Shown here piece after piece: positions 48,802-51,243 of a DNA stretch of 64,000 nucleotides. Source of the stretch: Penicillus capitatus (lineage: Eukaryota > Plantae > Chlorophyta). The DNA lies in the NCBI GenBank assembly GCA_965649825.1, contig OZ287699.1, positions 558,001 to 622,000 of the forward strand, written 5' to 3'. A program made the translations under genes and the position numbers. Position 1 is the first letter of the stretch; each line of letters starts with the position of its first letter. Under the pieces are notes generated by a model that saw only the letters and a list, made by a program, of their open reading frames with translations, had not been told where the DNA came from and made no database searches.

Positions 48802-51243
48802 ATGTCGTGTGCCGCTAATCGTTTGCCTCGTGGATGCAGACTGGGACAGACCCGTTCACATGTGTCGCGTCTCATCCCTGTGGCTGTGGCTCGTCGCGCT
48901 GATGGACGGAATGGAAACGTTCGAATTCCAGGCGTTGTTCCCGCCGTGACCGAAAACTTGGACAATGCCGAAAGGGCGCGTCTGGAAGCGACGGATGCGT
49001 TTAAGGAACTGGTTGCCCTTAACGCCAAGCAACAGTCACGCAACAAGCCACAGAAAGTACGGGACGTCTGTTTTCTGACCTGATCACGATGCCAGATGCA
49101 TCAAGGCGGAAGATCTCCTCTTTAAGCAGAATCCAACGTTCGAAGACTGCTTCCCCGGAAGCGAAAAGATGTATAAGACGATCGAGTGCGATGGGGAAAC
49201 GTTGAAAGTGGGAGAGGTTAAGTAACTCGAAATGACCTCATGGCTTTGCTGCTCGATAGGTGCCTTATCGCCGAGTGCATTTAACAAACGGGGATAGTTT
49301 TGATCTCTACGATACGAGTGGGACACAGGTGCTGGCATCGCACGTATGCGTGACTTCAGTGATGTGACGTTTCAGGGCCATGCACCTCAAGAAGGATTGC
49401 CCAAGATTCGATCGACATGGATAAAGAAGAGAGAGGAGAGAGGAGACAGTGTCTGCACACAGATGTACTATGCACGAAAAGGAATCGTCACAGAAGAGAT
49501 GGCCTTTGCGGCCGCACGCGAAAATATGGATCCCGAGTTTGTTCGTTCGGAGGTGCGTGCGCGCGCACATAGATGATGCGTCTTGTCGTGCACCAGACAG
49601 GAGATGTGTGACAGGTGGCCAGAGGACGCGCCATCATACCTGCTAACAAGAAGCATCTTGAGCTGGAACCGACGATCATTGGTAATGCCTTTCTTGATGT
49701 ACACTGCTAGGGGTGCCTGTGATGTCCCATTGTTTCAATGTGTGATGCACACGGCTGAGATGAGACCCTCACTACCGGATCACGTTAATGCGTGCGTCGG
49801 GAAGCAGTGTTCCTATCGTCTTGCAGGACATTGATGTCCACCTTTGATTCAGTGTCCTGTGTGTGCAGGACGGCGATTTTTGACAAAGGTGAACGCCAAT
49901 ATCGGCAATTCAGCCGTCTCTAGTTCCATTGAAGAGGTTGACTGTCCTGCCGTCGGAAGCTTGAATGCCGTGTTCGATGATGTAGGAGGTGGAGAAACTG
50001 CAGTGGGCGACAATTTGGGGCGCCGATACCGCTATGGATCTGTCGACGGGGAATAATATTCACGAGACGCGTGAATGGATTCTGCGTAATGCGCCTGTTC
50101 CTGTTGGAACAGTGCCGATCTATCAATGCCTCGAGAAGGCAGGTGGAATTGTGGAGAATATTACGTGGGACCTCTTCAAGGAGACATTGCTCGAACAGGC
50201 CGAACAGGGTGTCGATTACTGGACCATTCATGCCGGCGTCTTACTGCGTTATGTCCCTTTCACGGCGGAACGTGTGACCGGCATTGTCAGTCGTGGTGGT
50301 TCGATTCATGCCAAGCTCTGTTTGATGGACCACAAAGAAAACTTTGCATACGAACACTGGGATGATATCCTGGATATCTGTGCCAAATACGACATCTCCT
50401 TGTCGATTGGCGATGGTCTCAGACCTGGATGCATTGCGGATGCCAACGATGCTGCACAGTTTGCAGAGCTTAAGACCCAAGGAGAATTGACGCGTCGTGC
50501 ATGGGAGAAGAATGTTCAGGTGATGAACGAAGGTCCTGGACACGTTCCATTGCACAAGATACCTGAGAACATGCAAAAGCAACTGGACTGGTGCAACGAG
50601 GCGCCGTTTTATACATTAGGTCCACTGGCCACGGACATTGCCCCGGCCTATGATCACATTACTTCAGCCATCGGAGCCGCCACCATCGGAGGCCTAGGAA
50701 CGGCATTGCTGTGCTATGTGACGCCAAAGGAGCATCTGGGATTGCCAAACAGAGACGATGTGAAGCAGGGAGTGATTGCATACAAGATTGCTGCCCATGC
50801 TTCAGACTTGGCAAAAGGGCATCCCTATGCTCAAGCATGGGATGATGAGCTGTCCAAGGCTCGATTCGAATTCAGATGGTCATCGCTCTCGTGTTTGTCC
50901 GTGCAGTCACCTCACGCTGTTCTGTGTAGGTATGATCAGTTTAATCTATCGTTGGATCCAGTAACGGCACGGATGTTCCACGATTCGACTTTGCCACAAG
51001 AGCCTGCCAAGGTTGCACACTTTTGTTCTATGTGTGGACCCAAGTTCTGCTCCATGAACATTACACAAGTGATAAACCCGACCGATCACAGTTCTGATCA
51101 TCTTACCTGGTGTTGTGTGTTAACAGGAAATCCGACAGTATGCACGCGATAAGAACGTCGAAGACGATGACGCACCTGTTAAAGGGATGGAAGAGATGTC
51201 ACAGAAATTCAAAGAAATGGGCTCCGAAATCTATCACGAATGA
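48802..51243 (+). CDS. THIC: Phosphomethylpyrimidine synthase (plastid-targeted)
   Basis: [76 protein letters not shown]. Confidence 0.97.
49701..49810 (+). ncRNA. TPP (thiamine pyrophosphate) riboswitch aptamer in a THIC intron
   Basis: P1 ACACTGCT/AGCAGTGT (49701-08/49803-10); AGGGGTGC; GCTGAGA (49754-60); ACCCT; then CCGGATCACGTTAATGCGTGCGTCGGGAA forming P4/P5. It lies inside intron 49682-49868. Confidence 0.93.

Follow-up and report, generated by a model that had tools for sequence, protein, structure and literature searches.

To our knowledge, no riboswitch class other than that sensing thiamine pyrophosphate (TPP) is known in eukaryotes, and few of its expression platforms have been dissected. 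The element considered here lies in intron 5 of THIC, the gene for HMP-P synthase, of the green alga Penicillus capitatus. It was analyzed within a window of 64,000 nucleotides (nt), positions 558,001 to 622,000 of the forward strand of contig OZ287699.1 (GenBank assembly GCA_965649825.1), and all coordinates below are those of this window. TPP riboswitches in coding introns of green-algal THIC are already known, from Chlamydomonas reinhardtii and Volvox (Croft et al. 2007, as cited in PMC3597705, PMC9544697, and PMC10226581). Green-algal THIC riboswitches act by stop-codon inclusion through alternative splicing (PMC3597705; PMC9544697), and an alternative acceptor inside helix P2 of the aptamer has been established experimentally in green algae and plants (PMC9544697).

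As far as the citing papers describe the Chlamydomonas/Volvox element, intron 5 of P. capitatus shares with it the gene, the green-algal host, an aptamer placed in a coding intron, a premature stop on non-productive splicing, the absence of P3a, and the AGGG of P2. However, in the Chlamydomonas type, as described there, the AG of P2 serves as the acceptor, whereas in intron 5 this AG lies only 28 nt from the donor; a relative, L090, has 117 nt in this place and a further donor about 24 nt past P1. Intron 5 also departs from the described type in carrying a polypyrimidine tract and a YAG/GA acceptor sequence after P1 (a slash within a nucleotide motif marks a splice junction), together with a predicted hairpin that pairs two identical acceptors. 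What is new, at the level of the sequence, is a donor that abuts the aptamer, a P2 acceptor that is probably out of reach, and a compact, strictly conserved hairpin platform with duplicated acceptors.

The riboswitch of plant THIC genes (Wachter 2007; Bocobza 2007), which is known for a change in splicing, resembles the algal element in aptamer type, gene, and P2 acceptor. However, the plant element lies in the 3' untranslated region, unmasks a donor that is paired with P4/P5, alters 3'-end processing, and involves no stop codon; intron 5 differs in these respects, and a search of it for complementarity between P4/P5 and the splice sites found none. The NMT1 and NCU01977 genes of Neurospora (Cheah 2007; Li & Breaker 2013, PMC3597705) likewise have intronic aptamers, which there govern splice-site choice. 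The helices of NCU01977 bring distant splice sites together, conceptually much as P1 and the platform hairpin would bridge the 187 nt of intron 5 where other introns have about 50 nt. Yet the Neurospora cases involve the 5' untranslated region, donor choice, upstream open reading frames, and demonstrated switching helices; no such helix could be predicted for intron 5. Finally, yeast hairpins situated between the branch site and the AG are said, in work of Meyer and colleagues from 2011, to hide or approximate AGs in 3' splice-site selection. The intron 5 hairpin, which would bury two upstream AGs and hold a branch candidate in its loop, may be analogous, although the yeast hairpins are reportedly not ligand-controlled.

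A TPP aptamer in an oversized intron

Intron 5 interrupts THIC between the EPTIIG and RRFLTK codons, with the donor ATCATTG/GTAATG at 49682. The remaining seven introns of THIC measure 47-62 nt, and six introns of the eEF2 gene in the same window 44-61 nt; intron 5, at 187 nt, is 3.7 times the median of these 13 local introns (50 nt) and, set against their range of 44-62 nt, a clear outlier. A preliminary description of this DNA had put the excess at about fourfold, and had proposed that the intron holds a full TPP aptamer. The latter has been borne out by a search of the 64-kilobase (kb) window with Infernal and Rfam at the gathering threshold, in which RF00059 matches 49699-49819 of the plus strand with 60.1 bits (gathering score, 54.3; E = 2.7e-9) over the full model (1-105), far more than chance would give.

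All of the expected parts of the aptamer can be recognized. Helices P1, P2, P3, P4, and P5 are present, as is the pyrophosphate-sensor arm (GCG/ACC..GAUC..UAAU, where the slash is part of the motif), and P3a is absent, as it is in eukaryotic aptamers. Among the pairs of the RF00059 model, 22 of 24 are canonical in intron 5; the other two belong to P3, which is variable and refolds with a single bulge. P1 begins 19-22 nt after the donor. Judged from these features, THIC carries a genuine TPP aptamer in intron 5, within its coding region. Furthermore, reading of the DNA has confirmed where the preliminary description had placed the donor, P1, the proximal TTGCAG (49826), the stop at 49832-49834, and the distal acceptor (49868). 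The description had overlooked the P2 acceptor, the UAG met on retention at 49708-49710, the third AG at 49851-49852, and the hairpin between the acceptors.

Most of the 13 ordinary local introns carry the hexamer UGAUGU close to their 3' ends, and it is probably the branch-site consensus of this alga. A sequence resembling TTGATGT[A/C]CAC is found in three copies in intron 5 (49694-49704, 49742-49752, and 49831-49841; the slash here denotes alternatives). The region downstream of P1 repeats segments of the aptamer: TGATGTCC stands at 49720 and 49832, and TTGATGT[A/C]CAC at 49694, 49742, and 49831. Because these repeats also match the UGAUGU of local intron 3' ends, their meaning is ambiguous.

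Conservation of the aptamer and the sequence downstream

Contigs covering the same locus were obtained from ENA metagenomes. One of them, L007, is 99.2% identical over 6.2 kb and represents the same species; the other, L001, is 85% identical over 9 kb and represents a sister species. Both carry the same aptamer, with RF00059 scores of 60.1 bits in L007 and 61.3 bits in L001. In the other seven THIC introns, 81 of 347 aligned sites (23%) are changed relative to L001, and there are many insertions and deletions; 18% of third codon positions are changed as well. Intron 5, which is identical in L007, differs from L001 at only 4 of its 187 sites.

No substitution is seen at the 112 sites of the aptamer (binomial P = 1e-13 at the neutral intron rate, which is also used for the following values). 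Within the 58 nt past P1, both acceptors included, there are two (49813 C>T and 49818 G>A; P = 3.5e-5), and none occurs in the 50 nt from 49819 to 49868 (P = 1.7e-6). Upstream, in the 5' part of the intron, the sole changes are the two at 49694-49695 (TT>CC). Given 0/112 and 2/58 against 23% elsewhere, both the aptamer and the platform downstream of it are under strong purifying selection. The constraint on the platform is well above that on an ordinary 3' intron end, as judged from these counts, and constitutes the strongest evidence that 49811-49868 is a real expression platform.

Acceptors, branch candidates, and a hairpin after P1

The candidate proximal acceptor, UUCCUAUCGUCUUGCAG/G, lies 16 nt past P1. 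It fits the YAG/G acceptors of local introns, and the 17 AG-free nt that precede it are 76% pyrimidine; its use would produce the reading G/GA CAT TGA. The octamer TGCAGGAC (TGCAG/GAC) is identical at the proximal (49826) and distal (49868) acceptors, which are 42 nt apart. When the segment 49811-49875 is folded, its minimum free energy is -25.9 kcal/mol (z = -3.4), a stability reached by 1 of 200 dinucleotide shuffles. The predicted hairpin joins the region of the proximal acceptor to the distal acceptor and places both upstream AGs (49826 and 49852) in its stem, and its core is an 11-base-pair inverted repeat that was found independently of folding. The best match to a branch site in the platform, UUGAUGU (A49834), would suit 49852 or 49868, but not 49826.

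The intron can also be divided as 29 + 96 + 62 nt, if the GU at 49807 in the 3' strand of P1 is counted. On this split, the three-part plan that is presumed to be ancestral would still be recognizable, with its first part collapsed. After P1, no GU-type donor stands behind the first AG of intron 5, unlike in the relatives L002, L005, and L006. In these three, the first AG past the aptamer directly precedes GU (CAG/GU, at about 878-880, 83-85, and 139-141, respectively), an arrangement that reads as an acceptor plus a donor and would be like a recursive (zero-length-exon) splice site.

Transcripts and intron layouts in relatives

The isoforms of related algae show which routes are taken at this intron elsewhere. 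The closest relative with a transcript-like contig is P0001 (94%). Chlorophycean THIC transcripts (L002, L008, L009, L090, and L094) have the EPTI(I/V)G/R junction at the same position. In the search with the exon 2-5 peptide, ten truncated open reading frames (ORFs) of relatives, from contigs of the transcriptome type, end in EPTI(I/V)G-V-P/L/H (slashes within the brackets and at the end being amino acid alternatives). Such endings are those expected when exon 5 is joined to GGGUGCC, and thus indicate that the P2 AG (CUAG/GGGUGCC) is used as an acceptor. This isoform is the commonest among the relatives, and its junction is seen directly in the DNA of L008, L009, and L094. In L002, the acceptor is just upstream of P1. 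The routes seen in relatives are the P2 AG, an acceptor upstream of P1, or retention.

Retention is represented by L090-L092, JGI transcript contigs of one relative in which the riboswitch intron is wholly unspliced and the flanking coding sequence is continuous (L090:837-1176), and by L005 and L006, in which its 3' part is unspliced. The unspliced L090 contig displays the layout in full. Its donor (CATTG/GTGAGC) is followed by an upstream part of 117 nt that contains a CTGAC branch, by CAAG/GGGTGCC at P2, by the aptamer, by a second donor (CTG/GTGAGG) about 24 nt past P1, and by a 96-nt downstream intron that ends in TTTAG/GCCGCAAC. Read in this way, it is a cassette-exon design with the aptamer in a cassette of about 127 nt.

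In every one of the eight lineages examined, P1 is followed by 17-93 nt that are AG-free and rich in pyrimidines, which hints at a conserved acceptor-like element, unused in the available isoforms. The platform hairpin, when sought in the distant relatives L005, L006, and L008, is not significant (z about -1). In addition, L010-L017, the JGI metagenome contigs whose THIC is nearest in protein sequence beyond the group that the window itself belongs to (86-89% amino acid identity; GC, 0.51-0.71), have neither an EPTIIG/R intron nor a TPP aptamer within 1.5 kb; the presence of the riboswitch is thus patchy even among close THIC relatives. Further THIC loci found in the JGI metagenome scan carry 5' or 3' aptamers and are uninformative on the architecture of intron 5.

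In a transcript of another relative, L093:690-990, exon 5 continues at an alternative acceptor that lies upstream, giving ...EPTIVGRI and then a stop. The exon side of this alternative junction, GCCGCATC, mimics the true start of exon 6, GCCGCTAC. A stretch of N interrupts the contig, and ahead of exon 6 no more than the 5' half of an aptamer is recognizable.

Proposed mechanism and its alternatives

Taken together, the aptamer motifs, the constraint on the platform, the YAG/G with its pyrimidine tract, the shared octamer, the hairpin, and the short distance of 28 nt between donor and P2 AG suggest a model in which THIC intron 5 would be an OFF switch acting on splicing. When TPP is low, the donor at 49682 would be joined to the distal acceptor at 49868, yielding full-length THIC mRNA. 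When TPP locks the aptamer, splicing would be diverted within the 58-nt platform to an upstream AG, either 49826 or possibly 49852. The first would add 42 nt with an immediate UGA and the second 16 nt with a frameshift; in either case a premature stop would leave a stub of 224 amino acids that lacks the radical-SAM domain. The conserved hairpin (49816-49834 with 49849-49873), with the branch candidate in its loop, would set which AG is reached. Such a layout may have been derived from the plan seen in relatives, namely, an upstream intron of 117 nt that ends at the P2 AG, an aptamer cassette, and a second intron. Since the upstream part has shrunk to 29 nt in a lineage whose introns are about 50 nt long, the classical P2 acceptor is probably unusable.

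That TPP decides which 3' splice site of the platform is taken, 49826 or 49852, is considered plausible, though not quite probable. A more doubtful proposition is the larger one of a rewired THIC riboswitch, in which the P2 acceptor has been squeezed out and the 58-nt hairpin platform turns TPP binding into the choice of a 3' splice site. Equally tentative is the suggestion that such a platform would be a eukaryotic type not described so far, one that works without strand exchange and perhaps through a P1-dependent geometry of the oversized intron.

Several results weigh against the platform model. Within the 45 nt upstream of 49826, the branch pattern NT[GCA]A[CT] is matched only at A49782 and A49788, which lie inside the aptamer (P4/P5 and L5), and the sequence outside the aptamer offers just a weak CCUAUC 11 nt upstream. 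Acceptors past the aptamer are not joined to exon 5 in any truncated ORF or long isoform from the relatives. The exon 2-5 peptide search returned no transcript of P. capitatus itself from the collections searched, the best match, single-exon genomic ORFs aside, having 75% identity. Furthermore, neither the in-frame stop nor the 42-nt spacing, a multiple of three, has statistical weight. A stop turns up in 14 random codons with a probability of 0.49, and all four non-productive routes stop early, whether by retention (TAG at 49708-49710), the P2 AG, 49826 (GH, then stop), or 49852 (frameshift); consequently, the stop at 49832-49834 is not diagnostic, and the poison acceptor of the preliminary description would be just one among several conceivable off-routes.

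Folding gives no sign of ligand-dependent coupling either. Free and aptamer-enforced ensembles were computed with ViennaRNA for 49655-49900 and for seven 3'-truncated lengths, all within a purely thermodynamic model. At no splice element did the two ensembles differ, at full length or in the seven truncations. The AG at 49826 has an unpaired probability of 0.04 in both, at every length once the 3' strand of the hairpin exists, and the values are 0.01-0.03 for the AG at 49868 and 0.08 for that at 49852. The constant difference of 8.8 kcal/mol between the ensembles resides within the aptamer, and no mutually exclusive pairing between aptamer and platform was found in them. With accessibilities equal in both states, the modeling makes independent modules of the aptamer and the platform, without a strand-exchange switch. 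Two pairings of 6-8 base pairs noticed by eye, one between GGACAUUG (49826-49833) and the 5' strand of P3, UGAUGUCC, and one between UUCCUA (49810-49815) and UAGGGG of P2, are not favored by the ensemble and are not relied on. The earlier proposal of a switch between two acceptors is thus supported in part, by the acceptor consensus, the pyrimidine tract, and the conserved platform, but neither by a good branch match outside the aptamer nor by a ligand-dependent change in accessibility on folding.

Another explanation is that TPP controls retention. A locked aptamer that starts 19-22 nt past the donor and adjoins the platform hairpin would block removal of the oversized intron, and translation would read into the UAG at 49708-49710, which lies inside the invariant CUAG. 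In that case the hairpin would be constitutive, hiding the decoy AGs at 49826 and 49852 and presenting the branch site, in the service of splicing accuracy. Its prediction in both ligand states is what would be expected of such an element. The three unspliced contigs L090-L092 and the unspliced 3' parts in L005 and L006 are also in keeping with retention, as is the thiamine-inhibited splicing reported for the fungal thiA riboswitch (PMC10226581). However, the unspliced contigs may represent pre-mRNA rather than a regulated isoform, it is not evident how the spliceosome would be blocked by a folded aptamer at 20 nt from the donor, and retention by itself leaves the pyrimidine tract and YAG/G after P1 in eight lineages unexplained. 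Control by retention is accordingly rated as possible but rather unlikely, and the role of the hairpin in splicing accuracy is viewed with the same reserve.

Survival of the classical route, from the donor at 49682 to the P2 AG at 49709-49710, has in its favor that this acceptor is experimentally established in green algae and plants (PMC9544697) and that it gives the commonest isoform of the relatives, with ten ORFs ending in G-V-P/L/H. On this route, a mini-intron of 29 nt would be removed, and the rest would either be retained or lose a second intron of 62 nt (GU at 49807 to 49868), which is a normal size for a local intron on the 29 + 96 + 62 split. A branch-like UUGAUGU even stands 13 nt upstream of the AG (A49697), a spacing known from local introns. 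Yet even the shortest of the 13 local introns is 15 nt longer than this one of 29 nt, which would leave just 16 nt from donor to branch; the relative L090 has 117 nt in this place; and the only substitutions that L001 has in the 5' part of the intron (49694-49695) hit this putative branch motif. These points make the P2 route improbable. It would be still less expected, indeed very improbable, that the aptamer is conserved without thiamine regulation of THIC, or acts other than through splicing. Diatoms do provide a precedent that counts against the platform model, as their THIC aptamers, with conserved binding motifs, failed every test of regulation (PMC9544697), and the lack of predicted ligand-dependent structural coupling in intron 5 is in line with it. 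In contrast to the diatom cases, however, intron 5 keeps the AGGG of P2, lies in the coding region, meets a stop on every non-productive route, and is followed by an equally constrained platform; moreover, relatives demonstrably make poison isoforms at the same intron.

The THIC locus and its surroundings

The THIC model, which was built with the transcript of a relative as a guide, has nine exons and a full-length open spliced frame of 628 amino acids (Table 1). Exon 7 is 91% identical to THIC of Chromochloris zofingiensis and carries PF01964; judged from this identity, the alga would most likely be a chlorophycean resembling Sphaeropleales. The ORFs around THIC are those of typical nuclear genes (Kelch-BTB, eEF2, Nrap, ABC1 kinase, and SBF transporter). 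The 64-kb window contains no tandem repeats, no tRNA, and no Rfam match besides RF00059.

Two observations concern the ordinary intron 4 of THIC (49553-49614). An internal ACAG/GA that is kept in L001 lies 14 nt ahead of the real acceptor and could be a frameshifting alternative acceptor, and L007 has a 4-nt insertion (GTGC) at the 5' end of this intron. In three of the metagenome contigs that lack the aptamer, a long inverted repeat lies just downstream of THIC (L014:2620-2850, L016:2626-2849, and L017:1160-1383). It gives sub-threshold matches to plant microRNA precursors, the best having 49 bits against a gathering score of 137, and is most likely just a hairpin.

Table 1. Features of the THIC riboswitch intron, predicted splice junctions, and genes of the window. 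A slash in a motif or junction marks the splice point.
Feature	Position	Strand	Remarks
THIC coding region	48802-51243	+	open full-length spliced translation
THIC exons 1-5	48802-49056, 49106-49207, 49260-49328, 49376-49552, 49615-49681	+	
THIC exons 6-9	49869-49936, 49986-50878, 50930-51068, 51127-51243	+	
THIC intron 5, riboswitch-bearing	49682-49868	+	187 nt, GT..AG, phase 1
RF00059 TPP aptamer	49699-49819	+	core 49701-49810
P1	49701-49708 with 49803-49810	+	ACACUGCU with AGCAGUGU; 8-nt inverted repeat, 100% complementary
UAG, in-frame stop upon intron retention	49708-49710	+	within invariant CUAG of aptamer
AG of P2 AGGG	49709-49710	+	28 nt after donor; P2 pairing 49709-49712 with 49766-49769
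CUGAGA pyrimidine-sensor motif	49756-49761	+	from covariance-model alignment; motif named in PMC9544697
AG-free pyrimidine-rich tract directly after P1	49811-49824	+	76% pyrimidine; candidate polypyrimidine tract of proximal acceptor
Predicted platform hairpin	49816-49873	+	49816/49818-49834 with 49849-49871/49873 (slashes: alternative ends); apical loop 49835-49848 with UUGAU
Candidate proximal acceptor AG	49825-49826	+	TTGCAG/GAC; would add 42 nt
In-frame UGA of +42 isoform	49832-49834	+	also inside branch-like UUGAUGU (A49834)
UUGAU, likely branch site of distal acceptor	49844-49848	+	A49847, 21 nt before AG; from motif scan and 13 local introns
Third AG	49851-49852	+	TTCAG/TG; +16 nt and frameshift if used; within hairpin stem
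Productive distal acceptor AG	49867-49868	+	GTGCAG/GAC; yields conserved EPTIIG/ junction
Predicted productive junction			ACGATCATTG/GACGGCGATT
Predicted +42 junction			ACGATCATTG/GACATTGATG
Predicted +16 junction			ACGATCATTG/TGTCCTGTGT
Predicted P2 AG junction			ACGATCATTG/GGGTGCCTGT
Cytosolic eEF2 gene	12854-16000	-	at least 7 short introns, six measured at 44-61 nt
Nrap	19250-20143	+	
Kelch-BTB	29716-31473	-	
SBF transporter	38037-39374	-	
ABC1 kinase	41635-42468	+	

Implications

Intron 5 is a very compact case, with 187 nt in total and a platform of 58 nt. If it does not respond to thiamine, it would stand beside the diatom aptamers as a caution that conservation of an aptamer does not guarantee regulation. 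If the thiamine response is true, the intron would show how a splicing riboswitch can be rebuilt after genome-wide intron shrinkage has removed its original splice site, and it would offer a small, portable, thiamine-repressible intron for algal engineering.

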